Assembly: GCA_965603825.1 (NCBI GenBank)
Contig: CBFDEM010000060.1
Coordinates: 124,001-188,000, forward strand
DNA from: Blepharisma stoltei ATCC 30299
Lineage: Eukaryota > Protista > Ciliophora
Direction: 5' to 3'
DNA length: 64,000 bases
The notes under the pieces are model-generated. The model saw only the letters and a program-made list of their open reading frames with translations, ran no database searches and had not been told where the DNA came from. This document shows positions 3,868-37,533 of this stretch, piece by piece (position 1 is the first letter of the stretch; every line of letters begins with the position of its first letter). Made by a program: the position numbers and the translations under genes.

Positions 3868-6800
3868 CTATCCTTGAAACCTTCTCATAACTCCAGCTTG
3901 CTCCGCTTCTCCTTTTTTAGCAAAATCATTAAATATCTGCTCCAGCGAGCTTTGAGCTAGCGCATACTCTGTGATTCTTAGTCTTTCTTTATTTGTCTCT
4001 ACAATAGAAAAAAAATACCCAATTGATTTTTGGGCTTCTTTTGCAACCTTAAACTTATACAATGACGAAAAATGTTCCATTATTTCGACCTTTTTGAATT
4101 CGCTTTTCAGCCAATAATAAATTTTATCACCCATCTCTTCAATGATAGCCCAGGATACTAAAACATCTCTATGTACAGCTTCATCATTTTTTAGCTGCTG
4201 ATATAAAGAAGACCCTGCCCCTTTTTCTTGGATTTCTGCATATAGCGACCTTAGTCCTAACAAGCTTAAACACTCTTCCACTTGGTCTTTCTTTACCAAA
4301 GGAGCACCTTTTAGTACTCTATCTAAAATTTTCCCTTTGTCAGCCATTTCAAAAGTACTTGGCACATGGACTTTTGCTTCAAATTCATAGCGATCCCCAT
4401 ACTTGCTTTTAATCCAAGTAGCTGTTCCTAGACATCTAAGCCTCCCAGCGACCATAATTGCCATACGATCACTTAAAGCTTCGGCTTCTTCCATACTATG
4501 AGTCGTCAAAATGACAGATGAATTTTTACTTTTTATGTTCCCAATCACCTTCCACATTTTTTTTCTGGTTTCTGGGTCCATCCCTGCAGAAGGCTCATCT
4601 AAAAACACAACTGCAGGGTTTCCAATCAGGGCCATAGCGACTGATAATTTTCTTTTATTTCCTCCTGAATAGGTCCCAGACCGCTGGTCTGCATATTGTC
4701 TTAGATCCATTTGGTCTACCATTTCTTCTACTAGTGCTTCTCTTCTATCCCTGGGGATCCCTTTTATATCACAATACAGCCTTAAATGCTCTTTAGAGGT
4801 CAATAAGTCTGATATAGCGTCAAACTGAGGACAATACCCTATTAGCTCTCTAGCACGGTCTAGATCTTTCGTTACACTGTTCCCACATATAAAAGCCTCC
4901 CCTTGGGTAGGTGCAATTTCTCCAGTCAGCATTTTAAAAGTCGTGGTTTTTCCAGCACCATTTACCCCTAAAAATGCAAAACATTCTTGGTGGTTTACGT
5001 TAAAACTGACGTCTTCTACAGCTGCAAAGGCTTCTTTTAGACCAATTCTGAAAATTTTTCGGATCCCTTTGACGTTAACTGGGATATCTTTTGGATTAGC
5101 ACTTATGGCGATTCTGGCTTCTTTTTCGACATCAGCGTCAATTTCAAAGGCACTTGGCTCAACTTCTGGGGATTTCCAGAATCTTTGGAGAATTTTGGGG
5201 TGGGTTTCGAGGTATTCTTGGAGATAGACGAGGAGCATGTAGATTGGGATCATTAAAAAGTACATTAAAATGTCTCCTCCAGCGGAGTTTATGTCAAAAG
5301 CGTCATATTTTGAGGATTTACCGTCTAAGCTTGCATATAAGCTGGAGCTGCCTATGTCCATTAAACCATTCCCAAAACAAAAACTTGGGATAAACCTAAA
5401 AAGCCACCTGAGAAAGTTGCCAAGGCCTCTTGTGGAGTCAAAAATATACAAAACCATCACTACAGCTGGAAAAATCCCTCCAGCCACCACATTGAATAAA
5501 ATAGTCATAATCTGTGCAGTCGGGTAACTTTTAAAGAAAAAACTGGTAAAATAAGTAAATGGCGCTATAGCTATTCCATAAAAAATCATTAAAATTCAAA
5601 TAGCTCCATAATTATTTGAAGGCGACGTATATATTTTTACCTGAAAAAGCTGTACTAATAATGAACAAATAATGGCTGGTATAAAATGTTTTAAAGAGTC
5701 TCAGGTAAAATTGGCACACCAATAAGAAAATCTTGATACCCCACTGATCATATGTTGGTGCTTTACATTAGTTTCTCTTTCCCTTACAATTAATGCTACA
5801 ATTCCTGTAGGAATAAAGCTAAATCCCAGTGAAAAGACTATAGAAGCAATAAACCCGTCCCCAGTATTAGCAAGGTCTTTTACCTTTTTTGTGTATGGTA
5901 GTGGATAATTATAAACAGTCACAGTTACCGAGGTCCCTAAATTTGCAAAGATTTGGTTTGCTATATTGTTATAGTAAACCCCAGTAGCTTGTGGTGCTGA
6001 CTGGTTATGGAAAATTATGGCTTCATATTGGTCGTTAGTTGTGTCCATTTTATTAAAATAAAATGATCCCATTCTATAATTTTCTGGCTCAGCTCTGTGG
6101 TCAAATAGATATTTGTCAAACCATTGAAGGCTGTTTGCTGTATTTTTAAAATCTGAGTCTATAAGACTAGCGAAATTGCCATTAACTGTAGCATTTTCTT
6201 GAAAATAGTATAAAGGGGATTGAGGTTGGTCATAAAGAGAGGTTGATAATAAATGCTTTTCAGGAGTTTTAAAACCACTACTAATCATCATTAAAGCTAG
6301 TCCTACAAAAACCAACACAATGGGAATAAAAATTTCATAGATCAAGCTTTTTTTGTCCCTTTTTGATAGCAAAATTCTCTTCCGCAGCAGTGCTTTTAAA
6401 TGCATCATAAATAGTGATCCTTGTAGCCTATCGCGGGACAGCACAAAATCAATGTCAAGTGAAACCCCTTCATCGATTTGTTTTCTTTTAGATTTTTTTT
6501 TTAATTCTTGATCATCACCTCTGGCGACTCTTAAAAAGACTTCTTCAAGGGTTGTAACAGAGACTCCATATGAACGTAATTTAAGCCTACGGAGGCTAGA
6601 ATCTAATCGTGAAAAAAATGTGGTGAACTTAGAAGAGCTTGACGTAGGAATTTGAAACGTAATTTCAGCATGGACATTGCTCATTAATACTGCATTTGGG
6701 ATGCAAGAATTGATGAATTCTGTGACTTTTCTTGTATGAGATTTACTAGAGACTCCTACCTCTTTGACAATAGTTAAATAGTAGCCGACGCCATATCTTT

Positions 6801-9066
6801 TTTTTAAAAAAAGAGAACTGCCTAGGCATCTGAGCTTTCCTTGCGACATAATTGCGATTCTGTCAGCTAAAACGTCAGCTTCTTCCATATAGTGAGTTGT
6901 GAGAATAATAATTCTGCTACTTTTGTTGTTTTTAAGCATATCCCACATCTGCCTTCTTGCGGTTAAGTCCATACCTGATGTAGGCTCATCTAGTAATACA
7001 ATCGGAGAATCAGCGATTAAAGCAATAGCTAATGAAAGTCGTCTTTTCATTCCTCCAGACAAAAACTTAGATTTTCTGTCTTTTTTACCTATTAAATCGA
7101 CTTCAGACAATTTTTCTTTTATTTGATCACTTATTGCATTTTTATCTTTCATTCCTTTAAATACAGCAAATAAATATAAATGCTCCTCAGGTGTTAAGTC
7201 GTTAAACAATACATTATGCTGAGGGCAAACTCCAAGATACCTTCTTATTTGGCTCAAATCTTTTGATAGAAACAGATTATTGATTCTCATGTCTCCATAA
7301 GTAGTTGGTATAAGCCCACACATCATAGAAATCGTAGTAGTTTTTCCTGCACCATTATGCCCTAATAAAGCAAAAATTTGTCCTTTATAAATATCAAGGC
7401 TAAGATCATCAACGACGGTTTTATTTCCAAAAACTTTTTTAAAATTCCTAATAATCAAAGCCTGGCCATTCTCTTTCTGTTTTTGCATTAAATCAGTTTC
7501 TGGCTCTACATTATCAGGCCACTTAATGTCTTCATTAAAATCTTCTTCATATTTATTATATCGGTTTCTACACCAAAAGGATTTTGTGCATAAAAAATAT
7601 CAAGGCTTTTTTACACCCCACTCAGTAGGTCACACAATGTCAAGATAAATTGCCAAAAGAATAAAAAGAATTGAATCCACTACTAGAAAAGCTAGACAAG
7701 TCCCAAATGAATAATGCTCTACAATAGTTGAGGTATTTGATGACTGGACACCTTCTTGCCCATCTTCTAGCTTAGCTAAAACATTGCAGCCTAGTGTGAG
7801 TGCAACATTTGGGAAAATGGACGCTACGGTTTTTGAGCCTTGATCTCTAGAAGACCCAGTTACTGCGAAACTTATGAAATAGCTTACAAGAAAAGCCATG
7901 AGACCAAGCATAACAGCACTACGGGATTTTGAGAAAAAAGTGCTTATAAAGATGCTAAAAGTTAGACAGCTGATACCATAGAGCCAAAATAGTAAAAGTA
8001 GCATTCCAGCATTACTGTACTTGAAGAGGCTTATTGAAATGAGGCCACCGATTATAGCGATTAAGGTGTAGACTGTGAAATAATAGGTAACTCATGATAG
8101 CCAATATGCCTTATTTGAAAGTCCCATAATCATCATCATCTCTTTGATTTTATATTCTTTTTCTTGTACAATTAGTGACACCATTCTGCATACTGGAACC
8201 AAATAAGAAATAACCACAAAAAATGGCAACATGGTAGAAATCAGAGAAATGAAATCATCAGATACATAGTCGTCATAATACATAGGAACAAAACCAGCTG
8301 CTATATATGGGTTTGTATTATTTGAATACGTTTTTAGTATATAATTGTCAATATAATTCATTATATGTATGAAGTTTGACCCAAAATAATTATACTGGAA
8401 TGAAGGCATTGGCTTCCTCAAATACTTATCAGTAGCTTTTGAGTAGGAGTCAAAATCAAAAATATTTATGTAGTCCCCTAGTCTTTGACTTCCACTCTGG
8501 TAAGACTCTGTTACGTTAAACCTAAAGCTGTACTCTATCTTGTAAGGACTAGAACTATAGAATACTATAGCAAAACATATTTTCGGAGTTCCATTTTCTC
8601 CATAGTCACTGCTTTCTATGTAATCTTCTAAGTCTTGCTCTGATGAATAACTAGTAAATTTATAAGGATTTTCCAAATTCCCAATTTTTTCTTTAAGTGC
8701 TCTGATTATCTCATTTGCAAATGATCCTCGACCTTCATTTACAAATGCAATATTTCAGACGTTTTCTTTAGAGTAGTAATTTCTGTAATAGTTTTCTGAG
8801 AGATCTTTAGGGTTATCTGTGAATTTTACAGGTGGATCGAAAGATGAGCTGAAATAATTTTTATCATCATCGGATACTGTCATAGCTGATGGAGAAATAT
8901 AAGATTTAGCAGAATGCTTACTAAACCCAACTCCATCTCTTATAATTGCTAAAATAATTAAGAGAAACACGGGAAATAAAAACTCACACAGAGATCCACA
9001 AAGCCTTCTCTTCCAAAGTATTCAATTTTTGTACAACAAGGCTCTATAGTGCTGTCATATGGACAT
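3868..9066 (-). CDS. ABCA: ABCA-family full transporter, copy 1 (1732 aa, most divergent paralog)
   Basis: ORF fragments 3868, 5701, 7630, 8092 and 8755 share one frame and are separated only by 8 TGA codons, all aligning to Trp in paralogs. NBD1 GHNGAGKTT/LSGGMKRRL/LLDEPTSGMD; NBD2 GVNGAGKTT/YSGGNKRKL/FLDEPSAGMD; C-terminal SLEQIF. Confidence 0.93.
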
Positions 9067-10950: not shown

Positions 10951-13900
10951 TTAGATACCATGCGCGTATCTTCTTATAATTCCTGCTTGAAATTCTTCTC
11001 CTTTTCTTGCGAAATCATTGAAGATTTGCTCCAAGGAACTCTGAGACAGCGCATATTCAGAAATTTTTAGGGCTTCTTTATTCATTTCAACTGTAGAGAA
11101 AAAGTATCCTATTGATTTTTCCTCTTCTTTAGCGATTTTGAATTTATAAAGTGAAGAGAAGTGTTCAATTATTTCGACATTCTTAAACTCTCTTTTAAGC
11201 CATTCGTAAATTGTATCACCCAGCTCTTCAACAATAACCCAGGACACTAAAGAATCTCTTGATATGCATCCATCTACTTTTAATTGTTGATGCAAAGCAG
11301 AGCCTGCACCTCTTTCATGAATTTCCTCATAGAAATTCTTTGCGTCGAGAATTTCTAAACATGGCAAAATTCGATTTTCTGTGATTACTGTTTCTCCCAT
11401 AAGGATACGATCTAAAACCATTCCTCTATCATTTACTTCAAAATGGCTAGGAATTTCAACTTTTGCTTCGAACTCATATCGATCGCCATATTTGCTTTTA
11501 ATCCAGGTAGCAGTTCCAAGACATCTAAGCCTTCCAGCAACCATAATAGCCATACGATCGCTTAAAGCTTCAGCTTCTTCCATTGAATGAGTTGTCAAAA
11601 TGACTGAGGAGTTCTTTTGTTTAAGATTCCCAATGACTTTCCACATTTTTTTTCTAGTTTCTGGGTCCATTCCTGCAGAAGGCTCATCTAAGAAAACTAC
11701 TGTTGGATTTCCAATAAGTGCTATAGCTACTGACAATTTTCTTTTATTTCCTCCTGAATAAGTTCCTGCCAATATATCAGCATATTGCCTTAAATCCATT
11801 TGATCTATCATTTCTTCGACAAGTGCTTCTTTTCTATCTTTAGGAATTCCTTTGATATCTGAATATAGTCTTAAATGCTCTCTTGCTGTAAGCAGCTCAG
11901 ATATAGCATCAAATTGAGGACAGTAGCCAATTAGCTCTCTTGCTCTATCAAGATCATTAATGACATTATGTCCACAAATATAGGCTTCTCCAGTTGTAGG
12001 AGCTGTTTCTCCAGTCAGCATTTTGAAAGTAGTTGTTTTTCCAGCCCCGTTTACTCCTAAGAACGCAAAGCATTCTTGTTGGTTTACATTAAAACTCACA
12101 TCTTCGACTGCTGCAAAAGCTTTATTCATTCCTTGTCTGTAGATTTTTCTAATTCCTCTAACATTGACTTGAACTTCTTGAGGATTAACATTTAATGCAT
12201 TTTCTGCTTCTCTTTCTACATCATCATCAGCTTCATATTCTGATGGAGCTACATGGGGTACTCTACAACAACATTGCAGCAGTGTTTTATATGTTTCTAA
12301 GTATTCTAGGACATAAATAAGGATTAAATAAAACGGAATTGTGATTCCAAGCATTAAAATATCACCTCCAGCTGAGCCAATATCAAATGCATTATATAAT
12401 CCATCTATTTCATCCCAGCTTGAAAAGGATGATATACTTCCTATACTTAATAGCCCATCTCCATAGCAAAAAGCAGGACTTATTCTTAAAATCCACCTAA
12501 GATATCTTGCAACAGGCCTTGTAGATGTAAAAAGATAAAGAACCCAAATAAAGTATGGTAAAACTCCGCCCACAATAACATTGAAAAGAATAGTAGCAAC
12601 TTGTGCAGAAGGATAACTTTTGAAGAAAAAACTACTAAAATATGTAAAAGGCGCTATAGAAACTCCATATAAGAGCATTAGCACCCAAACAGCTCCATAA
12701 GTATCATCAGGGTCTGTAAAAGTTTTTACCTCAAAAGCCTTGACCAGTAAAGCACAAATTATAGCTGGAAATAAATGTTTAACAGAGTCCCAAAAGAAAT
12801 TTGCACACCAATACGAAAGTCTCGAGATTCCGCTGATCATGTGCTGGTGTTTGACATTAGTTTCTCTTTCTTTTACAATTAAAGCTATAATGCCTGCTGG
12901 AATGAAGCTAAAACCTAACGAAAATATAATTGCTGCAGTAACCCCATCTCAGATGCCTTTGATATCTTTAACTTTTTTGGTATAAGGAAGAGGGTAATTA
13001 TAAACCGCTATTTTTTTCCCATATTTTGAAAATATTTCATTAGAAAGCTTGCTATAGTAGACTCCAGTCGCTTGAGGAGCTGATTGATTGTGGAAAATAA
13101 CAGCTTGATACTGATCGTTGGTGGTATCCATATTTGTCAAATAATATGAGCCCATTCTATAATTATCTGGATCTGTTCGGGTATCAAATAAATATTGATC
13201 AAAACCTTCTATAGTATCATTTATAACACTATAGTCAGGGTTTGCATACTTTGAAAAGCTTCCTACATTTGTTCCTGCGGGCCAGTAATAAATTGTATCT
13301 TGAGGTAAAGAATATGAGGATTCAGTAAGCCTCTTTTTATCAGTAGGTGGAAGCTTCCAGCCAGTTTTCATTAAACTGAGCCCAAGGATAACTAATATAA
13401 TTGGGACAAAAATTTCATAGACTAGGCTTCTCAGGTCTCTTTTTGACAAGGAAACTCTCTTTTTTAAAAGCGTCCAAAAATGGCTGTAAAATAAAGGACC
13501 TTTAAGCCTATCTCTGGATAAAATAAAATCATCTTTAAGCTCACTTTCTTCTTTTTCCTGGTCTTTTTTAGCAAATCCTGAGGCATCTTCTCTTGCTACC
13601 CTTAAAAAGACTTCTTCAAGGGTTGTAACAGATATTCCATAAGACGGCAACTGTAAAAAGTTAAGTTGCTTGTCAAGGGCTGCAAAAAACTCAGTAAATT
13701 TACTTGAGCTAGAGTTAGGGATTTGAAAAGTTATTTCTGCATGCACATCACTCATTAAAGAAGCTTCAGGAATGTATTCTCTTATGAAATCCTTAACCGA
13801 TTGTGTATGAGTTTTGCTTGCAACTCCGACTTCTTTGACAATAGTTAAGTAATAGCCGACTCCATATCTTTTTTTCAAGAAAAGAGAGCTGCCAAGGCAT

Positions 13901-16427
13901 CTGAGTTTGCCATGAGACATAATTGCAATTCTATCTGCTAAAACGTCAGCTTCTTCCATATAATGGGTTGTGAGAATGATGATTCTATTATTTTTGTTGT
14001 TTTTGAGCATATCCCACATTTGCCTTCTTGCAGTTAAGTCCATACCTGATGTAGGCTCATCTAGTAGCACAATAGGAGAATCAGCGATCAAAGCCATTGC
14101 AAGGGATAACTTTCGTTTCATACCACCTGATAAAAGCTTACCCTATCCTATAAGTATATAAAAAATGTTAGAAACTACTATTAAATTATTGGCAATTTAT
14201 TTTAATATTATTTGAGCTATCAACGAAATTGGCAAAAATGAGCTAAGATATTTCTCTCAATTTTTTAAAAATGCCTTTATTTAATCTATCTATTATTTAT
14301 TAGGCGTAGCGTATTGCAACCCTTATGATTTGTTTCCTGTTAGTCGTCTGCTTCAAGTTGCCATTATTTAATCATTATTTAATCATTAATTAATCGTGTA
14401 TTATAATTTAATTTAAATGAGAAAGAGTTAGTTTGAGTATCTTTCTTGGATGTCAAATCGACTTCAGATAGTTTTTCTTTAATTTGGTGATATATTTCTT
14501 TCTTGTTATTCATACCTTTGAAGATAGCAAAAAGATATAGGTGTTCTTCAGGGGTTAATTCATTGAATAAGACATTGTGCTGAGGACAAACTCCTAGAGA
14601 TCTTCTTATTTTATTAAGATCTGTAGATAGGTATAGGCCATTTATTGTCATATCTCCATAAGTGGTCGGGATAAGGCCACACATCATTGAAATGGTTGTA
14701 GTTTTTCCTGCACCATTATGACCTAATAATGCAAAAATCTGCCCATTATATATATCTAAGCTTATATCTTCAACAGCTGTTTTGTCTCCAAAAACTTTTT
14801 TAAAGTTCCTTATAAGTAGAGCTTTTCCATTTTCCTTTTGTTTTTCTAAGTCCTCCTCAATTTTTTCTACATTGTCTCCCCAGCTGATTTCTGTATCGAA
14901 TAAATTTTGGTGCACATTTCGCTTGCTTGGCCACCAAAATGATTTTGAGAATAAAAAGTATCAAGGTCTTTTTACTCCTCACTCAGTAGGCCAAACTTGA
15001 TCAAGATAAATAGCTAAAACTGTAAAGATAACTGAATCAATTACAAAAAAAGCAATGCAAGTCCCAAACGTATAGTTATGCACCTCTGAGTCTAAATTAT
15101 CATTTTGCACTCCAGCCTGGCCATTCTCCAAATATGCTAGGACATCAGAACCTAAAGATAAAGCAACATTAGGCAGCAAAGATGCAGCAGTTTTATCTCC
15201 TCTTTCCAAAGTAGGATCATTAACAGCAAAACTTATAAAATAGCTTATTAAAAAAGCCATCAAGCCCAGCATTACAGCACTTCTAGATCTTGAGAAGAAC
15301 ATACTAATAAATATGCTAAAGGCCATACAATTGATTCCATATAGCCAGAAAAATAAAAATATCATTTCTGGAGCACTATATTTAAAAAGCCCTGCAGAAA
15401 TAATTGTCCCAACTATTGCGATAACTGTATATACAGAAAAATAATAGGTAATCCATGAAAGCCAGTAAGCTTTATTAGAAAGTCCCATAATCATCATCAT
15501 TTCTTTGATTTTGTATTCTTTTTCCTGGACTATTAAAGACAGCATTCTGCATACAGGAACAATATAAGAAATGACTAGGAAAAAAGGAAGAAGTCCAGCA
15601 ATCGCTAAAATAAAATCATCTTTGGTATAGTCATCATAATACATTGGAACAAAACCTGCGGCAAAGTAGGCATTTATATTAGAAGATACATCTTGAAGAA
15701 TAATATTGTCGATGTAATTCATCATATGTATAAAGTTTGTGCCTATGTATTGGTACTGGAACTTAGGCATTGGCTCTCGAATGAGCTTGTCAACATTTTT
15801 GTGGTCACGGAAATTAAAGATGTCTATAATATCTCCAAGTCCATATTCTCCTGATCAGTATGCCTCTGTTGTATTGAACCTGAAGCTGTATTCAATATTT
15901 TTAGAGTCTTTACTATAGAAGACGACAGCGAAACAAATTTTCCCACTATCTTCGTAATCACTGTCCTTTATATAGTCCTCTAAGTCCTCTTCGGAATCAT
16001 ACCGCTCAACTATATAAGGCTTTCCAGTATCATTTCCTTCAGTTTTTATTTTATCTATAAGCTTGAGTATAATAGTTTCTGAATATGGATCTTTATACTC
16101 ATTTATTAGCGCTATTTTCCATTTTTTATCTTTCTCAAAGTACTCCCTATAGTAGTTATCGTGGCATTTTGGGAAGTCTGGAAGCTTGGCAACAGGATCA
16201 AAATATTGCCCAAAGTAGTTATTGCCGTCATAAGAGACTGTCATTGCTGATTTCTTCAGATAAGAGGATTGATCATGGTCTGCATAACTAGCAGAACTTT
16301 TTATAGCCAGCAAGAAAAGTAGAAGGGCTATAGGAAAGGCCAATTCACATATTGAGCCACAGAGTATTCGCTTTCAGAGCACTCAGTTCTTGTACAGGAG
16401 TGCTCGATAGTGTTGCCAAAGAGACAT
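10951..16427 (-). CDS. ABCA: ABCA-family full transporter, copy 2 (1728 aa after removing a 290-bp insertion)
   Basis: 5477 bp minus 290 bp gives 1729 codons. All fragments are in frame once 14141-14430 is removed. Contains 6 TGA codons. Both NBDs have canonical motifs. Confidence 0.85.
14141..14430. mobile_element. 290-bp TTA-bounded insertion: putative internally eliminated sequence (IES) or decayed MITE
   Basis: AT-rich segment absent from the six paralogs, flanked by TTA at 14138-14140 and 14428-14430. Excision leaving one TTA restores KKDTQTKLLSGGM (paralogs KKDKRTKFLSGGM). No GT at the 5' boundary on the gene strand. Confidence 0.85.
14362..14394. repeat. 3 x 11-bp tandem repeat CATTA(T/A)TTAAT inside the insertion
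   Basis: cattatttaat cattatttaat cattaattaat, read directly. Confidence 0.8.
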
Positions 16428-17705: not shown

Positions 17706-20700
17706 CTAGCTACCATGAGTATATCTTCTAACAATTCCTGCTTGAGATTCTTCTCCTTTTCTTGCGAAATCATTGAAGATTTGTTCTAAAGAGCTTTGAG
17801 ACAACGCATATTCAGATATTTTAAGGGCTTCTTTATTCATTTCAACTATAGAGAAAAAGTATCCTATTGACTTTTCCTCTTCTTTAGCAATTTTGAATTT
17901 ATAAAGTGAAGAGAAATGTTCAATAATTTCGACTTTCTTAAATTCACTTTTAAGCCATTCATAAATTTTATCACCCAGCTCTTCGACAATAACCCAGGAC
18001 ACTAAAGAATCTCTTGAAATACATCCATCTACTTTTAATTGTTGATATAAAGCAGAGCCTGCACCTCTTTCATGAATTTCCTCATAGAAATTCTTTGCGT
18101 CGAGAATTTCTAAACATGGTAAAATTTGATTTTCTGTGATTACTGTTTCTCCCATAAGGATACGATCTAAAACCATTCCTCTATCATTTACTTCAAAATG
18201 GCTAGGAATTTCAACTTTTGCTTCGAACTCATATCGATCGCCATATTTGCTTTTAATCCAGGTAGCAGTTCCAAGACATCTAAGCCTTCCAGCAACCATA
18301 ATAGCCATACGATCACTTAAAGCTTCAGCTTCTTCCATTGAATGAGTTGTCAAAATGACTGAGGAGTTCTTTTGTTTAAGATTCCCAATGACTTTCCACA
18401 TTTTTTTTCTAGTTTCTGGATCCATTCCTGCAGAAGGCTCATCTAAAAACACTACTGTCGGATTTCCAATAAGAGCCATTGCAACTGAAAGTTTTCTTTT
18501 ATTTCCTCCTGAATAGGTTCCTGCCAAAATATCAGCATATTGCCTTAAATCCATTTGATCAAGCATTTCTTCAACTAGTTCTTCTCTCCTATCTTTAGGA
18601 ATTCCTTTGATATCTGAGTATAATCTCAAATGCTCTCTTGCTGTAAGCAGTTCAGATATAGCATCAAATTGAGGGCAATACCCTATCAGCTCTCTTGCCT
18701 TATCTAGCTCAGTACTAACATTATGTCCACAAATATAAGCATCACCAGTTGTAGGTGCGATTTCTCCAGTCAGCATCTTAAAAGTTGTAGTTTTTCCAGC
18801 TCCATTTACCCCTAAAAACGCAAAACACTCTTGCTGGCTTACATTAAAGCTCACATCTTCTACCGCCACAAATAATTTGCTCATTCCTTGCCTAAAAATC
18901 TTTCTAACACCTCTTACATTAACCTGGACATCTTTTGGATCCATATTTAAAGCGTTTGCTGCTTCTTTTTCAACGTCATCATCAGCTTCATAATCTGTAG
19001 GCGCAACTACAGGGGTTTTCCAGAACTTTTGCAACACTTTTTGATGGGTTTCTAAGTATTCTTGGACATATACAAAGAATAAATATAATGGAATTGTGAC
19101 CCCGATCATTAAAATGTCAGCCCCAGCTGAGCCCATGTCAAATGCATTATATAAGCCGCTTTTCTCGTCCCATATGGAATAATTAGATATGCTTCCTAGA
19201 TCTAATAGTCCATTTCCAAAACAAAAAGCTGGGCTTAGTCTGAAAAACCACCTGAGACCTCTGCCAATTGGTCTTGTGGACTCAAAGAAATAAAGGACCA
19301 GGATAAATGCTGGGAGAATTCCACCTGCAACTACATTGAAAAGAATAGTAGCAACTTGTGCAGTTGGATAATTTTTGAAGAAAAAGCTAGTAAAATAAGT
19401 GAATGGCGCTATGGAAATTCCATATAAGAGCATTAGCACCCAAACGGCTCCATAGGTATCATCTGGATCAGTAAAGCTTTTTATATCAAAAGCTAAGACC
19501 ATTGCAGCACAAATAACAGCTGGAAAGATATGCTTTATAGAGTCCCAAAAGAAATTTGCGCACCAATAAGAAAATCTTGAAACCCCACTTATCATGTGCT
19601 GGTGTTTGACATTAGTTTCTCGCTCTTTTACAATTAAAGCTATAATACCTGTTGGGATGAAGCTAAATCCTAATGAAAAGACTATTGAAGCTAAAAATCC
19701 ATCCCCTGTTCCCCTTAGATTTTCAATTTTTTGAGTGTAAGGGAGTGGATAATTATAAACTGTCACTTTTACACCATATTTTGATAATATTTCATTAGAG
19801 AGCTTATTGTAGTAGACTCCAGTAGCTTGAGGAGCTGATTGGTTGTGGAAAACAACAGCTTGGTACTGATCATTAGTAGCATCCATATTTGATAAGTAAT
19901 ATGAGCCCATTCTATAATTATTTGGATCTGTGCGGGTATCAAATAAAAATTTATCAAAGCCTTCAATTGTGCCATTAATATTTGCTGTTTTAGAGCTTTG
20001 ATATTGCGCCCATGGTCCAACATTGGCACCAGCTGGCCAGTAATAAACTGTATCTTGAGGTTCTGAATATAAAGATTCTGACAAAAATTTTTTGTTAATT
20101 GGAGGAAAGCCATCACGAATTTTCATTAAGCCAAGTCCAACAATTACTAAGACAATAGGTACAAAAATCTCATAGACTAAGCTTTTTATATCTCTTTTAG
20201 ACCAGAAAACTCTCTTCTTCAGCAAAGTCCAAAAATGACTAAAAAATAGTGAGCCCTTTAGTTTATCTCTTGATAAAACAAAATCATCACTAAGCTGAAC
20301 ATCAATTTCTTTTTCCTTTTCCTGCTCATTTTTAGCAATTTCTGAATCATCTCCTCTTGCAACTCTCAAAAAAACTTCTTCAAGGGTTGTTACAGATACA
20401 CCATAAGACCGTAATTGCAGACTTTTTAGTTGCTGATCAAGAGCTGTAAAAAATTCAGTAAATTTACTTGAGCTAGAGTTAGGGATTTGGAAAGAAATTT
20501 CTGCATGAACGTCGCTCATTATAGATGCTTCAGGGATATAGGCTCTTATAAAATCTGTAACAGATTGAGTATGAGTTTTGCTTGCAACTCCGACTTCTTT
20601 GACAATAGTTAAGTAATAGCCGACTCCATATCTTTTTTTCAAGAAAAGAGAGCTGCCAAGGCATCTTAGTTTTCCATGTGACATGATTGCAACTCTATCA

Positions 20701-22904
20701 GCTAAAACATCTGCTTCCTCCATATAGTGGGTTGTCAGGATAATGATCCTATTATTTTTGTTGTTTTTGAGCATATCCCACATTTGCCTTCTTGCAGTTA
20801 AGTCCATACCTGATGTAGGCTCATCTAGTAGCACAATAGGAGAATCGCCGATCAAAGCCATTGCCAATGACAGTTTTCTTTTCATACCCCCTGACAAGAA
20901 CTTAGTTCTTTTATCTTTTTTATCTGTTAAGTCTACTTCTGATAATTTTTCTTTAATTTTTTTGTAGATTTCCTCTTTATCTTGCATTCCTTTGAAAATA
21001 GCGAAAAGATATAAGTGCTCTTCAGGTGTTAAGTCATTGAATAAGACATTGTGCTGAGGGCAAACTCCAAGAGACCTTCTTATTTTATTAAGATCTGTAG
21101 ATAAGTAATTTCCATTTATTTTCATATCTCCATATGTTGTTGGTATAAGTCCACACATCATTGAAATTGTTGTAGTTTTTCCAGCACCATTATGCCCTAA
21201 TAATGCAAAAATCTGCCCATTATATATATCTAAGCTTATATCCTCAACTGCTACTTTATTGCCAAAAACTTTTCTAAAGTTTCTTATAAGTAAAGCTTTT
21301 CCGTTTTCCTTTTGCTTTTCTAAGTCCCCCTCTACCTTTTCTACGTTATCTCCCCATGAGACTTCGTCATTGAATAAATCCTCATGAGCATTTTTGCTGC
21401 TGGTAACCCAAAATGACTTTGTGAATAAAAAGTACCAAGGTCTTTTGACTCCCCACTCTGTAGGCCAAACCTGATCCAAATAAAGCGCTAAAATAGTAAA
21501 AATGCCAGTATCAATCGCCAAAAATATAATGCAGGTCCCAAATGTATAGTTATTTACAACTGAGTCAGTGTTATCATTTTGAACTCCAACTTGGCCGTTT
21601 TCCAATTGCGCCAAAACATCACAGCCTAGAGTTAAAGCGATATTAGGTAGCAAAGATGCAGCAGTCTTGCTGCTTTCATCTAAAGAAGGATCACTTACTG
21701 CAAAACTCATGAAATAGCTTATAAGAAAAATCATAAGTCCAAGCATTACAGCACTACGTGACTTTGAAAAAAGCATACTGATGAGGATACTGAAGGTCAT
21801 ACAACTTAGTCCATAAAGCCAGAAAAATAAAAACATAATTCCTGGAGCGCTATATTTAAAAAGACTGATTGAAATAAATGAGCCAACAACTGCAATAACT
21901 GTATAGATTGACAAATAGTAAGTAAGCCATGAAAGCCAGTAGGCTTTATTGGAAAGTCCCATAATCATCATCATTTCTTTGATCTTGTATTCTTTTTCCT
22001 GGACTATCAAAGATAGCATTCTGCATACAGGAACTATATATGAAATAACTAGGAAGAATGGAAGAAGGCCAGCAATTGCCAGGACGAAGTCATCTGCAGT
22101 CCAGTCATCATAATACATAGGAACAAAACCTGCCGCGAAGTAGGCATTTTCATTGGAGGAAACATCTTGAAGGATAATGTTATCTATATAGTTCATCATA
22201 TGCATGAAGTTGGTGCCAATATACTGGTATTGAAACTCAGGCATTGGCTCTCTAATAAGCTTATCGACATTATGGTGATCACGGAAGTTAAAAATATCTA
22301 TCCATTCGCCCCTATTTCTTCCATCTGATGACCCATAGGATTCTGTTGTATTGAACCTAAAGCTATACTTAATATTTTTGGAGTCTTTGCTATAAAAGAC
22401 CACTGCAAAACAAATTTTTCCATTATCTCCATAGTCGCTGTCCTTTATATAGTCTTCTAAGTCATCCTCAGAGTCATAGCGCTCAACCACATATGGTCTT
22501 CCTGTGTCGTTTCCTTCAGCTTTTATTTTATCTACAAGCTTGTTTATGATAGTTTCTGAATAGGGCTCTTTATACTCATTGACAAAAACTATTCTCCATT
22601 TTTGGTCCTTATTAAAGTAGCTTCTATAGTAGTTCTTGTGGCCTTTTGGGCTGTCTGGGATTTTGGCAGGTGGGTCGAAATATTGGCCAAAGTAGTTGTT
22701 GCCGTCATAAGAGACGGTCATTGCTGATTTTTGGAGGTAGGAGGCTTGATCATGATCTGTATAGCCGACAGCACTTCTTATCAGCATTAAGACTAGGAGT
22801 AAGGCTATCGGAAAGAGCCATTCACACATAGACCCGCACAGTTTTCTCTTCCAGAGAATCCAGTTTTTGTACAGCAGTGCTCGGTAGTGTTGCCAAATAG
22901 ACAT
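17706..22904 (-). CDS. ABCA: ABCA-family full transporter, copy 3 (1732 aa, no TGA codons)
   Basis: Uninterrupted ORF even under the standard code, with TMD-ECD-NBD twice. Serves as the internal reference for the other copies. Confidence 0.96.
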   Translation of the reverse strand: MSIWQHYRALLYKNWILWKRKLCGSMCEWLFPIALLLVLMLIRSAVGYTDHDQASYLQKSAMTVSYDGNNYFGQYFDPPAKIPDSPKGHKNYYRSYFNKDQKWRIVFVNEYKEPYSETIINKLVDKIKAEGNDTGRPYVVERYDSEDDLEDYIKDSDYGDNGKICFAVVFYSKDSKNIKYSFRFNTTESYGSSDGRNRGEWIDIFNFRDHHNVDKLIREPMPEFQYQYIGTNFMHMMNYIDNIILQDVSSNENAYFAAGFVPMYYDDWTADDFVLAIAGLLPFFLVISYIVPVCRMLSLIVQEKEYKIKEMMMIMGLSNKAYWLSWLTYYLSIYTVIAVVGSFISISLFKYSAPGIMFLFFWLYGLSCMTFSILISMLFSKSRSAVMLGLMIFLISYFMSFAVSDPSLDESSKTAASLLPNIALTLGCDVLAQLENGQVGVQNDNTDSVVNNYTFGTCIIFLAIDTGIFTILALYLDQVWPTEWGVKRPWYFLFTKSFWVTSSKNAHEDLFNDEVSWGDNVEKVEGDLEKQKENGKALLIRNFRKVFGNKVAVEDISLDIYNGQIFALLGHNGAGKTTTISMMCGLIPTTYGDMKINGNYLSTDLNKIRRSLGVCPQHNVLFNDLTPEEHLYLFAIFKGMQDKEEIYKKIKEKLSEVDLTDKKDKRTKFLSGGMKRKLSLAMALIGDSPIVLLDEPTSGMDLTARRQMWDMLKNNKNNRIIILTTHYMEEADVLADRVAIMSHGKLRCLGSSLFLKKRYGVGYYLTIVKEVGVASKTHTQSVTDFIRAYIPEASIMSDVHAEISFQIPNSSSSKFTEFFTALDQQLKSLQLRSYGVSVTTLEEVFLRVARGDDSEIAKNEQEKEKEIDVQLSDDFVLSRDKLKGSLFFSHFWTLLKKRVFWSKRDIKSLVYEIFVPIVLVIVGLGLMKIRDGFPPINKKFLSESLYSEPQDTVYYWPAGANVGPWAQYQSSKTANINGTIEGFDKFLFDTRTDPNNYRMGSYYLSNMDATNDQYQAVVFHNQSAPQATGVYYNKLSNEILSKYGVKVTVYNYPLPYTQKIENLRGTGDGFLASIVFSLGFSFIPTGIIALIVKERETNVKHQHMISGVSRFSYWCANFFWDSIKHIFPAVICAAMVLAFDIKSFTDPDDTYGAVWVLMLLYGISIAPFTYFTSFFFKNYPTAQVATILFNVVAGGILPAFILVLYFFESTRPIGRGLRWFFRLSPAFCFGNGLLDLGSISNYSIWDEKSGLYNAFDMGSAGADILMIGVTIPLYLFFVYVQEYLETHQKVLQKFWKTPVVAPTDYEADDDVEKEAANALNMDPKDVQVNVRGVRKIFRQGMSKLFVAVEDVSFNVSQQECFAFLGVNGAGKTTTFKMLTGEIAPTTGDAYICGHNVSTELDKARELIGYCPQFDAISELLTAREHLRLYSDIKGIPKDRREELVEEMLDQMDLRQYADILAGTYSGGNKRKLSVAMALIGNPTVVFLDEPSAGMDPETRKKMWKVIGNLKQKNSSVILTTHSMEEAEALSDRMAIMVAGRLRCLGTATWIKSKYGDRYEFEAKVEIPSHFEVNDRGMVLDRILMGETVITENQILPCLEILDAKNFYEEIHERGAGSALYQQLKVDGCISRDSLVSWVIVEELGDKIYEWLKSEFKKVEIIEHFSSLYKFKIAKEEEKSIGYFFSIVEMNKEALKISEYALSQSSLEQIFNDFARKGEESQAGIVRRYTHGS

Positions 22905-23421: not shown

Positions 23422-24449
23422 GATTTTTATCACTTAAAAAGAAGATATTATCCCCTTAATTTTGACTGTAGGTTTTTATTTCAGAGTTTCATAACTTTTG
23501 TCAAAATTTCAAAAAATTGCTTTTATATAATTTTCAACTAATCTCATGTAAATTCTTTATTTTAGCCAAGATCAGACCAAAAAACTCTTATAAAGCTTTA
23601 ATTTTTCAATTTTTCTGGGCTTTTAAGATGCATTTTCCATTTATGCTGGAATAGGTATTTCATTTGTCTAGGCATATCCAATTGAAATTAGTTTCAAATC
23701 TTATCATATTCTTAAAATATAATTTCAATCAATTTCTCTTTAAATTCACTTAAAACTATGAATTTGGGAAAATCTTAAAGGAATTAAAACGCTTAAATTT
23801 ATAGTTTTTTTTATATCTAAAAGGAAGCAATAAATAATCAAAATTATTTGTGAGGCATTTGAGCTAATCATGATAGGATTTAAAGTTTCTTATTTTAAAT
23901 TGGAATAAGAAACTTTATTTGTTGATGTATGGCGAGATAAGCAAAATTGCAAATGTTAAAGTAATAAAATTCACAGATGAAATTAATTAATCTCTTGATA
24001 GAAAATAAGCTCACAGAAAATTAGATGATAGAGAATAAGGTTTTAGTTCTATTTTTAAAAGGCGGGCAGTCCTTATTCATTAAGAATTTTTCAAAATCTG
24101 CATTCATTTTTATGAGTTTCAAAATTTTCTTAAATGAATTTTCAACAATAATGTAATCTTTCTATATGCAACTATCAATATTATCGGGCAAGCAGTCTAT
24201 AGTTTTAGTGAATCTATCTTGTCAACTATTTTGCTCATATATTAATCTATTTAAATATATTTATATGCTTCATATGGCACAATGAATCATCTGAGAATAA
24301 ACTTTTTTAGAGCATATCTAAAGGAAAGCTTAAAATATTTTAAATGAAAAAGCTAATAAAAATCCTAAATTTTTAAATTATATGCACATAATTTAATATA
24401 ATAGATATATTTAATGAATAATGATACTTAACTAGTAATTATCTATACT

Positions 24450-27400
24450 TTATCCTCCATGAGTGTATCTTCTAACTATTCCTGCTTGAGCTTCTTCTCC
24501 TTTTCTTGCAAAGTCATTGAAAATCTGCTCCAAAGAACTTTGAGACAGGGCATACTCAGAAATTTTCAAAGCTTCTTTATTCATTTCGACTGCTGAGAAA
24601 AAGTATCCAATTGATTTGTCCTCTTCTTTTGCAATCTTGAACTTATAAAGCGATGAGAAATGTTCAATAATTTCGACTTTTTTGAATTCACTTTTAAGCC
24701 ATTCATAAATTTTATCGCCAAGCTCTTCAATAATAACCCAAGCCACTAAAGAGTCTCTTGATATATATCCATCTACCTTTAATTGCTGATGTAAAGCAGA
24801 GCCTGCACCTTTTTCGTGAATTTCTTCATATAAATTTTTTGCATCAAGGGCTTCTAAACATGGTAAAACTTGGTTTTGCTTAATGGTTGGCTCTCCCATA
24901 AGTATACGATCTAGGCTTACTGCTTTATCATTAACCTCGAAATGGCTTGGAATGGCCACTTTTGCTTCAAATTCATAACGGTCTCCATATTTGCTCTTAA
25001 TCCAGGTAGCGGTTCCAAGACATCTAAGTCTTCCAGCAACCATAATAGCCATACGATCGCTTAACGCTTCTGCTTCTTCCATAGAGTGAGTCGTCAAAAT
25101 AACTGAAGAATTCTTTTTCTTGATATTCCCGATAACTTTCCACATTTTTTTTCTAGTTTCTGGGTCCATTCCTGCAGAAGGTTCATCTAAGAAAACTACT
25201 GTTGGATTTCCAATAAGAGCCATCGCAACTGAAAGTTTTCTTTTATTGCCACCAGAATAGGTTCCTGCCAAAATATCAGCATATTGCCTTAAATCCATTT
25301 GATCTATCATTTCTTCGACAAGTGCTTCTCTTCTATCTTTCGGAATTCCTTTGATATCTGAGTATAATCTCAAATGTTCTCTTGCTGTAAGCAGCTCAGA
25401 TATAGCATCAAATTGAGGGCAATAGCCGATTAACTCTCTTGCTCTATCAAGTTCAGTAATGACATTATGTCCACAAATGTAAGCATCACCTGTTGTAGGA
25501 GCAATTTCACCAGTAAGCATTTTGAAAGTAGTTGTTTTTCCAGCTCCATTCACTCCTAAGAATGCAAAACATTCTTGTTGGCTTACATTGAAGCTCACAT
25601 CTTCGACTGCTGCAAAAGCTTTATTCAGTCCTTGTCTGAAGATTTTTCTGATCCCTCTAACATTGACTTGAACATCCTTAGGATCGACACTTAGAGCAGT
25701 TTGTGCTTCTTTTTCGACATCATCGTCAGCTTCATACTCAGAAGGAGCAACATGAGGAGCTTTCCAGAATTTTTGTAAAATTTTTGGATGAGTTTCTAAA
25801 TATTCTTGAACATAAACAAGGAACAAATAAAATGGAACTGTTATTCCAAGCATTAAAATATCAGCCCCAGCTGAGCCTATATCAAATGCTTTATATAAAC
25901 TGCTTTTTTCATCCCAATTTGAGTAAGAAGATATGCTTCCTAAATCCATTAATCCGTTCCCATAGCAAAAAGCTGGACTAAGTCTGAAAATTCATCTAAG
26001 AACTCTACCGAGAGGTCTTGTGGACTCAAAGAAATACAGAACAAGTATAACTGCTGGGAAAATTCCTCCTGCAACAACGTTGAAAAGAATAGTAGCAACT
26101 TGTGCAGTTGGATAATTTTTGAAGAAAAAGCTACTAAAATAAGTGAATGGGGCTATAGAAATCCCATAAAGAAGCATTAGCACCCATATAGCTCCATATG
26201 TTTCATCAGGATCAGTAAAGCTTTTTATGCCAAAGGCTTTAATCATAGCAGCACAAATGACACCTGGGAATATATGCTTAACAGAGTCCCAAAAGAAGTT
26301 AGCGCACCAATAAGAAAACCTTGAAACTCCACTAATCATATGCTGATGCTTGACATTAGTTTCTCGCTCTTTTACAATTAAAGCTATAATACCTGTCGGA
26401 ATAAAGCTAAATCCTAGCGAAAAGACTATTGAAGCCAAAAACCCATCTCCGACTCCTTTTAGATCTTCCACTTTTTTAGTATAAGGAAGAGGGTAGTTAT
26501 AAGCAGTTATTGTTACACCATATTTTGACAAAATTTCGTTAGAAAGCTTGTTGTAGTAGACTCCAGTTGCTTGAGGTGCTGATTGATTGTGGAAAATAAC
26601 AGCTTGATAATGGTCATTAGTAGTATCCATGTTTTTCAAAAAATACGAGCCCATTCTATAATGCTCAGGATCATCACGGGTCTCAAATAAGAAATAATCA
26701 AAACCTTCAATTGTACCATTAATATTTGCAGTTTCAGTACTTTGATATTGTGACCAAGCTCCAACATTAGCGCCAGCTGGTCAATAATACAATGTATCTT
26801 GAGGCTCAGAGTATGACGACTCAGTTAACCGCTTCTTATGAGCAGGAGGGAAACTATCTCCAATCTTCATTAGCCCTAGACCAACTATGACAAGTACAAT
26901 CGGTACAAAAATTTCATAAACTAAGCTTTTTAAATCTCTTTTCGACCAGAAAACTCTCTTTTTAAGCAGAGTGTAAAAATGGCTAAAAAACAATGATCCG
27001 GTCAGCCTATCTCTTGACAAAACAAAGTCATTTTCTAGCTGAGCATCGTTTTCATTTTCTCTTTGTGTTTCGTTTTCTTTTTTAGCGATTTCATTATCAT
27101 CTCCTCTTGCAACCCTCAGAAATACTTCTTCTAGAGTTGTTACAGAGACACCGTAAGATCTTAATTGCAAATTTTTCAGATTTTGGTCAAGAGCAGTGAA
27201 AAAAGTAGTGAATTTGCTTGAACTGGAATTAGGGATTTGAAATGAAATTTCAGCATGAACGTCACTCATAATTGAAGCTTCAGGAATGTATTCTTGTATG
27301 AAATTTGCCACTGACTTGGTATGAGTTTTGCTTGCAACTCCGACTTCTTTAACAATAGTTAAGTAATAGCCTACACCATAGCGTTTTTTCAAGAAAAGAG

Positions 27401-29651
27401 AACTGCCAAGGCATCGGAGTTTTCCATGAGACATAATAGCAATTCTATCTGCTAAAACATCTGCTTCCTCCATATAATGGGTAGTTAGAATAATAATTCT
27501 ATTGTTCTTGTTATTTTTAAGCATATCCCACATTTGCCTTCTTGCAGTTAAATCCATTCCAGAAGTTGGCTCATCCAATAATACAATAGGAGAATCAGCA
27601 ATCAAAGCCATTGCAAGGGATAATTTTCTTTTCATACCCCCTGATAAAAATTTAGACTGTCTATCTTTTTTGGCTGTTAAATCTACTTCTGTAAGTTTTT
27701 CTTTAATTTGTTGGTATATTTCTTTTTTATCCTTCATTCCTTTGAATATAGAGAAAAGGTATAAGTGCTCCTCTGGTGTCAAATCATTAAATAGAACATT
27801 GTGCTGAGGACAGACCCCAAGAGATCTTCTTATTTTGTTAAGATCTGTAGATAAATAATTTCCATTGATTTTCATATCCCCATAAGTTGTTGTAATTAAT
27901 CCACACATCATCGAAATTGTTGTAGTTTTTCCAGCACCATTATGGCCTAGTAAAGCAAAAATTTGTCCGTTATATATATCTAAGCTGATATCTTCAACAG
28001 CTGTTTTTGTACCAAATATTTTTTTGAATTTCCTTATAAGCAAAACTTTACCATTTTCTTTTTGTTTTTCTAAGTCTTCCTCTACTTTTTCAACATTATC
28101 TCCCCAGTCAATTTCTTCATTAAATAAATCTTCATGTGCATTCTTTTTACTTGGACACCAAAATGTTTTTGTGAATAAAAAGTACCAAGGTCTTTTTACG
28201 CCCCACTCAGTAGGCCAAACCTGATCTAAATATAGAGCTAAAATTGAAAAAATTCCTGAGTCAATAACCAAAAATGCAATACAGGTCCCAAATGTATAGT
28301 TATTTACTTCAGAGTCTGTATTGCTATCTTGGACTCCAACTTGACCATTTTCCATTTGTGCGAGAACATCACATCCTAAAGTTAAAGCAATATTAGGTAA
28401 TAATGATGCAGCAGTTTTGCTACCCTCATCTAAAGTAGGATCAGTGACAGCAAAACTTATAAAATAGCTTATCAGAAAAGCCATAAGGCCTAACATTACA
28501 GCACTACGAGACTTGGAAAAGAACATACTGATAAAAATGCTGAAAGTCATACAACTAATCCCATACAGCCAGAAAAGTAAAAACATCATGCCTGGAGCAC
28601 TATATTTGAAAAGCCCGACTGATATTATAGCGCCAACGATTGCGATTATTGTGTATATTGACAAATAATAAGTAATCCACGAAAGCCAGTAAGCTTTATT
28701 AGAAAGTCCCATAATCATCATCATTTCTTTGATTTTGTATTCTTTTTCCTGGACTATTAAAGACAACATTCTGCATACTGGAACTAAATAAGAGATGACT
28801 ACAAAGAATGGGAGAAGCCCTGAAATAGCTGAAATAAACCCATCAGAAGTATAGTCATCATAATACATTGGAACAAAACCAGCTGCGAAATAAGCATTTG
28901 AATTTGAAGAGACATCTTGAAGAATAATGTTATCTATATAGTTCATCATATGCATGAAGTTGGTGCCAATATACTGGTACTGGAATTTAGGCTGTGGCTC
29001 TCTGATGAGTTTATCAACATTTTGATGGTTTAGAAAATCAAAAATATCTATAAAGTCGCCCAAATTCCTTCCTCCTGACCCGTATGATTCTGTTGTATTA
29101 AATCTGAAGCTATATTTAATATTTTTGGAGTCTTTGCTATAAAAGACGACAGCAAAACAAATTTTGTCATCATCTTCATAGTCACTATCGGTAATATAGT
29201 TTTCTAAGTCATCTTCAGAATCAAAGCGGTCAACTAAATAAGGATAGCCTGTGCCATCACCTTCAACTTTGATTTTATCTATCAGTTTAGTAATGATAGT
29301 TTCTGAATATGGGTCTTTATATTCGTTGACAAAAACGATTTTCCATCTGTCATCTTTACGAAAGTAGTCTCTATAGTAATTTTCGTGGTCTTTCGGAAAG
29401 TCTGGAATTTTAATTATTGGGTCGAAATACTGGCCAAAGTAGTTGTTGCCGTCATAGGAGACAGTCATAGCTGATTTATAAAGGTAAGAGTGCTTGTCAT
29501 AATCTGTATAGCTCACTGCACTTCTTATAAGTAGTAAAACAATTAGTAAAGCGATAGGAAAGAGAAATTCACAGATTGAACCACACAGTCTTCTCTTCCA
29601 TAGGATTCAATTCTTGTATAAAAGTGCTCTATAGTGTTGCCAAAGAGACAT
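24450..29651 (-). CDS. ABCA: ABCA-family full transporter, copy 4 (1733 aa)
   Basis: 5202 bp in a single frame, with 3 TGA (25992, 26781, 29607) at paralog Trp positions. Confidence 0.94.
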
Positions 29652-35988: not shown

Positions 35989-37533
35989 TTATTATAAAAG
36001 CCTAAAAACTTTGGAGAATTTCTGAACAACAAAAAAAAATCTGAATAGAAGAGATTTTTAGAGTTTGAAATATAATTTTTAGTGCAAGTAAATATTGCTT
36101 TATTTATATAAAAACTTAACGTAAGGCCTGTCTTTGTTTGGTTTTTATGGACAATCTTCATATTTATGTTGACAAATGGAACTAGAAGAGGCCTTTGAAT
36201 AGTGTTTTTGTTGGAAAATAAAGAATTATTATTTTTAGCTAAGAAGAAGCAAATTTTTAAAGTAATTTTGTTTTGATAAAGTAGAAAAATCTAAAATTAT
36301 CAATATTCAACGTTTTTTTATAAGCATCCTTTGAAGATAATTTTTTTCTCAACAGAAAAGTCATTTTATGTTTAGAAGTGATAAATTCTCTTCAATTGCT
36401 AAGAGCTTGGTTTGCCTAAGAGCCAGAGTTCATCATCACCCGTATTATGATAATGAAAATTTTTTGAATTCCAAAAATTTTAAACCTTGAAAGAGTAGAA
36501 GCAAATAAATTTAGAGTGCGAAAATCTAATAATAACTAAGATTTGTCATCATATACCTAAATTATAAATATTTTGATACGATGTTCGTTGCTTGAGTTTT
36601 GTAACGATTTTCTGTTTTGAAAAATATTAAAAGGAATAAAGTTGAAACTACAGCTTCCAGTCCAAATTTTAATCAACAAATCTACTATAAATATTTTAAA
36701 GTGATAATTTATAACTCTCGATTAAACAGCAAGCCTAGAGAGTTGCATTTCAAGTAGTCTTAACTTTATTATAAATGCAAGCAAAGAAAATATTTGGAAT
36801 GGTTGAAAAATAAAATTTAAAGATTATTCAGCGAAATCTTTACTAATTTTCTATTTTATAAATGCTTCCTCTTATTCTAGGGTATTTAAAAGTTTTTTCT
36901 TATGAAAACAAAAGTCGATGAATAAAATTTTTATGAATATCTCTATATTCTATTTAATTGGAAACAAATATAAACGAGTTCATTAATTATGCTCGAATAA
37001 TTTGAGTAAAATATTTAATTTATACATATTAATAGTGTTTTTAGATATAAAACTCTATAAATACTTTGATTTTATACTAAGTTCATTTATAAAATTTTCT
37101 CCAGAAAACATTTCCGATAAGTATGAATTAATTTTATTAAAATGGAAATTTATTATTAGCTTCAAAATAAAATTATTATTATGAAGCTGAATAAAAAAAT
37201 CAGCCTTTTCTAAATGCAAACATTCTTCAATGCTTATAACTAGTTTCTTGATATAAAAGATGAAGATTTCACTTGAATTGTTGCAAATCAAGTAATGCTG
37301 AAACAAATATATTGAAAATGTTCATAAAAATTCAGTTTTTTGCGTTTTTAGTTTTTTCAATTTAAGATAATTATTAATTATGTAAAAAATTCCTATAAAT
37401 TTGGACTGTTTTGAGGAGATACTTTTCTGTGTAAAATTAATTTTTAATTAATATAATTTATATCATAAACCCTTTTTATCGAGGTTAGGAATTTTAATAA
37501 ATGTTGATATTAACTAGTAATTATCTATTTTTT

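Follow-up and report, generated by a model that had tools for sequence, protein, structure and literature searches.

A 290-bp insertion in an ABCA transporter gene of Blepharisma stoltei, a probable relic of a transposon-derived germline element kept in somatic DNA

In ciliate models, transposon insertions borne by genes survive only through their precise removal by genome editing. Here, we describe a 290-bp insertion that is present in the somatic, macronuclear (MAC) DNA of Blepharisma stoltei ATCC 30299 and that interrupts copy 2 of a tandem array of seven ABCA full-transporter genes. The window that we analysed is a stretch of 64,000 nucleotides (positions 124,001 to 188,000 of contig CBFDEM010000060.1, assembly GCA_965603825.1), and all coordinates given without the name of a contig or locus refer to it. 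The MAC genome of this virtually homozygous strain was assembled from HiFi reads telomere to telomere; it uses UGA as a Trp codon and contains introns of 15-16 nt (PMC9942806).

The ABCA array and the insertion in copy 2

The seven paralogs all lie on the minus strand, at 3871-9066 (c1), 10954-16427 (c2), 17709-22904 (c3), 24453-29651 (c4), 30796-35988 (c5), 37537-42731 (c6) and 44121-49313 (c7). The long minus-strand open reading frames (ORFs) of the window emerge solely when TGA is read as a sense codon. Since the TGA codons of the array are found almost only where the paralogs have a conserved Trp (TGG), UGA is read as Trp in these genes. Copy 2 has the organisation of an ABCA protein, with two transmembrane domains (TMDs) and two nucleotide-binding domains (NBDs) in the order TMD-NBD-TMD-NBD, and each NBD has its Walker A, signature and Walker B motifs; the Pfam domains ABC2_membrane_3 and ABC_tran are recorded on both of its halves.

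In its MAC form, copy 2 is split within NBD1. The 5′ part (14379..16427, minus strand) is an ORF of 682 codons that spans TMD1 and NBD1, ends just short of the signature motif and continues for 16 codons into the insert before a TAA stop at 14379-14381. The 3′ part (10954..14121, minus strand) is annotated as a separate gene of 1056 aa, P0128, which begins at the Met of the LSGGM signature, its frame being shut upstream by an in-frame TAG at 14143-14145. The public gene models thus give copy 2 as a 682-aa gene and a 1056-aa gene, and both copy 2 and copy 6 appear in them as fragments. We had considered the split annotation of copy 2 as evidence against the existence of reads spanning an excised junction, and dropped this argument because the Intronarrator pipeline accepts only gaps of 10-99 nt.

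The insert occupies 14138-14430, two codons before LSGGM, and consists of a 287-bp body and a duplicated TTA (TAA on the gene strand). In gene orientation, the upstream copy of the duplication is at 14428..14430 and the downstream copy at 14138..14140, where AA together with the G at 14137 rebuilds a Lys codon once the insert is taken out. The body (14141..14427) has a GC content of 24.7%, no ORF and no second copy in the MAC genome. Its boundaries were set by alignment with the paralogs and not by a search for motifs. The sequence of the gene strand is ...ACT CAA ACT AA|CTCTTTCTCATTT...GGATAGGG TAA|G CTT TTA TCA GGT GGT ATG, and the joined peptide, DTQTKLLSGGM, corresponds to D(R/K)(Q/R)(S/T)KFLSGGM in the paralogs. 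The insert is missing from all six MAC paralogs, which have a single TAA at this site (cTAAg or cTAAa in the alignment), so that the repeated TAA of copy 2 is a true target-site duplication (TSD). In silico removal of the 290 bp joins 666 and 1062 codons into a frame of 1728 sense codons plus stop that is colinear with the paralogs, and neither a TAA/TAG nor a frameshift is found in these 1728 codons. On all these points, namely the position and flanking repeats of the insert, its absence from the six paralogs and the frame restored by its removal, the preliminary description of this DNA was accurate.

The germline locus and a nested element

The contig that encodes P0128, CAJZBQ010000060.1 of assembly GCA_914767885.1, is a germline-like record of the same region. 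Judging by how it is built, and by the 'micronuclear genome' project cited in the paper of Seah et al. (PMC9942856), it is probably their 'MAC plus IES' reconstruction, which would have been made by placing internally eliminated sequences (IESs) back into the MAC reference. We rebuilt 66 kb of germline sequence from four of its loci. It consists of blocks that are 99.8-100% identical to the window and parted by extra segments, and the few differences within blocks are alignment artefacts at IES boundaries. Between 2154 and 52297, it contains 45 IESs bounded by TA or TAA, the window being otherwise colinear with it. TAA/TTA is the boundary repeat in 16 of these 45 IESs. Many of them combine TAA/TTA repeats with C-rich inverted ends, including canonical BogoMITEs, a family of miniature inverted-repeat transposable elements (MITEs), of 385-396 bp. 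Such features are known in Blepharisma, for which TAA/TTA TSDs, C-rich terminal inverted repeats (TIRs) and nested MITEs have been described, as has a continuum in the retention of IESs, and in which TAA/TTA probably reflects a preference of the excisase (PMC9942856).

The IESs mapped within the ABCA coding sequences are all absent from the MAC (36/36), and the insert of copy 2 is the single germline insertion in these coding sequences that the MAC keeps. No germline IES was found at the homologous site in any paralog, which indicates that in the germline, too, copy 2 alone bears the insertion. The insert differs from an IES in the usual sense, germline-present and MAC-absent, in that it is found both in the MAC assembly and in the blocks of macronuclear-destined sequence (MDS) of the germline-like record. 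It resembles one in having a TA-containing terminal direct repeat (TDR), the TTA at 14138-14140 and 14428-14430, and in that its precise removal restores a coding sequence, as seen in silico only.

Within the insert, the only germline-limited part is a nested MITE of 579 bp (L011:3297-3875 in the germline-like record), which is absent from the MAC. Its excision junction in the window is at 14244..14246 (minus strand; TTA on the gene strand) and parts the insert into two arms of 184 bp and 103 bp. The nested MITE has no ORF; its ends form a perfect TIR, at least 24 nt long (C8-ATCCTTGATCGAACGA), and it comes with a TTA duplication of its own. The MAC genome has hardly any trace of this TIR: a single decayed copy lies at C11:615392-615411. 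The element also contains three direct copies of the TIR core (CCCCCATCCTTGATCGAACGA), one of which pairs with the right TIR to form a tight hairpin with a 7-nt loop.

Three consequences follow. First, because the MITE duplicated a TTA that belongs to the arms, the arms are real germline DNA. Second, as the MITE lies inside the outer element, the outer element is the older of the two. Finally, the window is an edited somatic molecule, since the nested 579 bp have been removed from it. The preliminary description had rightly taken the window for somatic sequence. It had also suggested a germline read-through in the assembly, and this does not hold: inside the insert, the germline-like record has a further 579 bp, a MITE-IES that is missing from the window.

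Termini of the insert and condition of the ABCA copies

Both ends of the insert read TWA + CYC, a start that is seen at 1.04% of the TWA sites of the MAC window versus 17/29 of the IES ends that begin with TWA. The gene-5′ end (14399..14430, minus strand) reads TAA-CTCTTTCTCATTTAAATTAAATT. It shares 22/24 nt with the terminus of a 154-bp IES at 41883, in copy 6, the match being terminal in both elements; its score of 18 is to be compared with a null of 9.75 +/- 1.5, and 0/1500 random TWA sites scored as high. The layout of this end, TAA followed by a C/T run of about 10 nt and TTTAAATT, is also that of a family of IESs with the TIR CT(T/C)CCCCCC-TTTAAATTGGAAC (p ~0.007). The latter is a second MITE-like family, with elements of 537-829 bp, TAA or TGA repeats and a TIR distinct from that of BogoMITEs; its members map to window junctions 2530, 3799 and 10346 (germline loci L015/L016), and relics of its ends are found in intergenic MAC DNA near 23880-23905. 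The gene-3′ end (14138..14169, plus strand) reads TTA-CCCTATCCTATAAG.

The body gives less to compare. A search of the whole MAC assembly (41.46 Mb, 64 contigs) with the insert returned only the insert itself. Sensitive blastn and nhmmer searches against the window, the MAC loci with Bogo-like TIRs and the 45 local IESs found no body homology, the IESs giving only weak AT-rich matches, and profiles of two local MITE families found no relatives of the body. A TAA...TAA pair with CYC ends, 295 bp apart in the MAC (36712-37009), was also considered and rejected, as it has no similarity to the insert.

The preliminary description had mentioned the TAA/TTA-bounded, MITE-derived IESs of Blepharisma. 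The insert does have a TAA/TTA TSD as BogoMITEs do. However, the TIR of BogoMITE (rnd-1_family-0), about 30 bp of the form CTC-polyC-CTCCGTGAGCGAACAAAA, is matched by neither end of the insert when up to 4 mismatches are allowed, and the insert ends, aligned with those of family A, score 1 and 6, inside the null range. Nor does the body of this family, of about 389 bp, have a match in the window when seven local copies are used as an nhmmer profile. On sequence grounds, the insert is thus not a BogoMITE, although it belongs to the same broad class of TAA-duplicating elements with C-rich ends. What stands is the wider statement that one paralog carries a TAA/TTA-bounded element resembling a transposon or an IES, as seen from its TSD and TWA+CYC ends.

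Another element of this kind is kept in the MAC, in the intergenic DNA upstream of copy 7. It resembles a BogoMITE in a decayed state, is about 240 bp long (50987-51226) and has ...TTCCTCTGTGAGCAAACAAAA at its left end and ...TTGTTACGGAGAGAGAG-TTA at its right end. It lies within one MDS block of the germline-like record and was hence not called as an IES. This example shows that Bogo-like relics persist in the soma where they are harmless.

To examine the state of the genes, we used pairwise Nei-Gojobori distances, three-taxon branch estimates and Tajima tests, the two halves of copy 2 being handled as separate partitions or alignment rows. Among c2-c7, pairwise dS is 0.74-1.19 and dN/dS 0.07-0.14. 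Copy 2 has accumulated 157 replacements versus 82 in its sister c3 (p ~1e-6), whereas the rates at fourfold sites are equal (72 versus 66). Upstream of the insert, the branch omega of copy 2 is normal (0.105); downstream, it is 0.17-0.24 versus 0.07-0.12 in the other copies, and the surplus replacements fall in the linker and in TMD2 and the second extracellular domain (ECD2). The NBDs of copy 2 are both conserved to the level seen in the paralogs, and none of their Walker A, signature and Walker B motifs is damaged. Given these branch omega values, the conserved NBDs, the intact motifs and the lack of stops and frameshifts, the disruption of copy 2 is recent relative to its branch dS of about 0.3-0.6. 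Copy 2 is therefore unlike an old pseudogene: either it was under selection until recently or it is still encoded by a part of the MAC copies.

Two TGA (Trp) codons of copy 2 stand in place of Gly, at ~15849 (column 193 of the alignment) and at 12949-12951 (column 1076). The Gly at column 1076 is invariant in the paralogs, and all the other TGA codons of the array are at Trp or aromatic positions.

Contrary to the preliminary description, the insert is not the sole interruption in the array. In copy 6, two additional nucleotides at 40543-40547 (minus strand; GCGCT versus GCT in all paralogs) shift the frame in the HYMEEAD/H-loop region of NBD1, and the public annotation splits this copy into genes of 532 aa and 993 aa. 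Its branch omega is still low (about 0.07-0.09), and the lesion, as it stands in the HiFi-based assembly, is thus recent. Copies 2 and 6 also share an IES position in the germline: IESs of 166 bp (14847-14849, copy 2) and 272 bp (41154-41155, copy 6) occupy an identical GAC-TTA-GAA site at column 531. They have no sequence similarity to each other, which fits an ancient shared IES as well as repeated insertion at one hotspot. All the other intragenic IES positions are specific to one paralog.

A probable history of the insert and its parallels

In effect, copy 2 has recently become a pseudogene of this array of seven genes: in the MAC, it is a truncated 682-codon ORF followed by an orphan 3′ part. 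We consider that the 290-bp piece is probably the relic of a Bogo-like, transposon-derived germline insertion, most likely a former IES, that is no longer excised in the sequenced strain. A non-autonomous Bogo-like element would have inserted at a TAA of copy 2 after the paralogs had diverged. It would most likely have spent some time as a precisely excised IES, tolerated like its neighbours. Later, the younger 579-bp MITE landed within it, making its own TTA duplication. The machinery now cuts precisely at the intact ends of this MITE, and the old arms (184 and 103 bp) stay in the somatic DNA. The ends of the outer element are decayed and asymmetric and its body has no relatives, unlike those of a freshly transposed MITE, which argues for a long residence in the gene. 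As such a residence otherwise conflicts with the intact ORF, it points in turn to past excision. We infer that excision of the relic was once efficient, that the use of the outer boundaries was lost recently and that redundancy among the paralogs made the loss tolerable. Of the three options offered in the preliminary description, an insertion that escaped editing and was tolerated through redundancy is the best fit, with the refinement that the element would be a former IES and that excision no longer takes place at its outer boundaries.

The switch of boundaries may have been caused by the nested MITE, by decay of the outer ends or by maternal retention. It is possible, and we propose it tentatively, that the young MITE diverted the machinery from an old, weakly marked IES, a capture of boundaries that would have turned the flanks of the old IES into somatic DNA and knocked out the host gene; alternatively, retention of the outer element might vary between clones and be inherited maternally. 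If the capture of boundaries is true, the locus shows an IES as it dies, through conversion from IES to MDS, together with the cost of a nested MITE insertion.

Several points weigh against the history that we favour. The gene-3′ end beyond TTA-CCC is not recognisably TIR-like (p ~0.22-0.26, not significant). The body of the insert matches no known family, and the term 'MITE' as applied to it draws on the TSD and the termini. If the germline-like record was indeed made by adding IESs to the MAC reference (PMC9942856), it would not be fully independent evidence for the arms. The faster change of the copy 2 protein, in the linker and TMD2/ECD2, could reflect functional divergence instead of decay. 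Finally, the MAC copies that keep the insert are known just as the assembler's majority.

This last point bears on the strongest alternative, namely that the insert is a partially excised IES, a minority or variable and possibly maternally inherited share of the MAC copies having the 290 bp cut out at the TAA repeats. Full-length copy 2 protein would then still be made to some extent and, in the extreme version of this explanation, the locus would be a heritable on/off switch. The fully intact ORF, the conservation of both NBDs and the IES-like ends with their TAA TDR are all compatible with it, as are the roughly 10,000 low-frequency 'cryptic' MAC excisions, with TAA/TTA among the common TDRs, and the retention continuum reported for this genome (PMC9942856 and its Supplementary Information, SI). 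However, the insert is kept in the consensus of a HiFi assembly, so that retention is the majority state. Nothing points to regulation, and six paralogs leave little need for a switch, of which our sequence-level analysis of the locus found no evidence. A protein search for products of an excised junction (query 12952-14142, minus strand) gave a best match that is 58% identical, and none from Blepharisma at that length. We regard partial excision as rather doubtful.

Less likely still is a disabling insertion that was fixed and never an IES, either captured filler DNA or a one-off defective element, with copy 2 a pseudogene ever since. In its favour, the body has no relatives and one end has no TIR, and the lesion of copy 6 indicates that the array tolerates losses. 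Yet the exact TAA TSD, the TWA+CYC at both ends and the terminal match to a genuine IES point to an insertion of the Bogo-like class. Moreover, a never-excised insertion that had been in place long enough for its ends to decay and for a MITE to land in it would be expected to come with stops or frameshifts in copy 2, whose 1728 codons contain none.

A long or non-canonical intron, removed from the RNA, is highly improbable. One phase-compatible GT...AG pair does exist on the gene strand (donor 14463, acceptor 14143, about 321 nt, some 20 times the usual length of an intron), but its splicing would remove 11 conserved residues (VDLTSKKDTQT) ahead of the signature motif. Intron boundaries in Blepharisma are GT-AG, rarely GC-AG, GG-AG or GT-GG (PMC9942806), whereas the four possible excision registers of the 290-nt insert start with TA, AA, AC or CT and end with GG, GT, TA or AA; none starts with GT, GC or GG or ends with AG, and its exact boundaries thus obey no GT/GC/GG-AG rule. 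In addition, Blepharisma introns are almost all of 15-16 nt and longer ones are spliced less efficiently (PMC9942806 and its SI). The insert is therefore non-spliceable, as first described, and the gene could be restored solely by excision from the DNA at the TAA repeats.

The idea of an artefact of assembly, or of contamination of the MAC assembly by micronuclear DNA, has no specific support and is equally improbable, because the germline form has a 579-bp MITE that the window lacks, the TTA duplication of this MITE shows the arms to be real germline DNA, and a HiFi-based telomere-to-telomere assembly of a virtually homozygous strain disfavours an allelic or indel artefact (PMC9942806).

Among the known systems closest to the relic that we propose are the BogoMITE IESs and Bogo (Pogo/Tigger) transposons of the B. 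stoltei germline (PMC9942856). As in these, a TAA/TTA duplication doubles as the IES repeat, the ends start with CTC or CCC, and a short, AT-rich, non-coding element lies within a gene; degenerate BogoMITE copies of about 300 bp have also been described (Seah et al. 2023, PMC9942856). It differs from them by the absence of the TIR core CTCCGTGAGCGAACAAAA from both ends and by its presence in the MAC, as it is not germline-limited. With the TTTAAATTGGAAC-TIR family and the IES at 41883, it has in common the layout of its gene-5′ end. Here, one end only matches and the bodies show no homology, and those elements are excised whereas the insert is kept. Like the spliceosomal introns of Blepharisma and Stentor (15-16 nt), it interrupts a coding sequence and has to be removed for read-through. 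Unlike them, it has no canonical boundaries, is about 19 times longer and has a TAA direct repeat, which is a signature of DNA transposition.

The nearest precedent for the fate of the insert is a mutant of Paramecium tetraurelia in which, according to the account given in Arnaiz et al. 2012 (PMC3464196, citing Mayer, Mikami and Forney 1998), an outer IES remains in the MAC and an IES nested in it is still excised. In both cases, the inner element is removed precisely, the outer one stays in the soma and interrupts a gene, and the nested IES is visible only through retention of the outer element. The case in Paramecium, as it is reported there, is that of a laboratory mutant in which one end of an IES carries a point mutation, and concerns TA-bounded, PiggyMac-dependent IESs. 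In contrast, the B. stoltei locus represents the natural state of a heterotrich reference strain, and its inner element is a young MITE. This locus is thus a natural instance of a known editing failure and not a new mechanism. It displays a failure mode of genome editing in a natural reference strain of an early-branching ciliate, and it offers a test case of a size accessible to PCR for the marks that define boundaries (intact versus decayed ends), for the redirection of excision by nested elements and for the variability and inheritance of retention.

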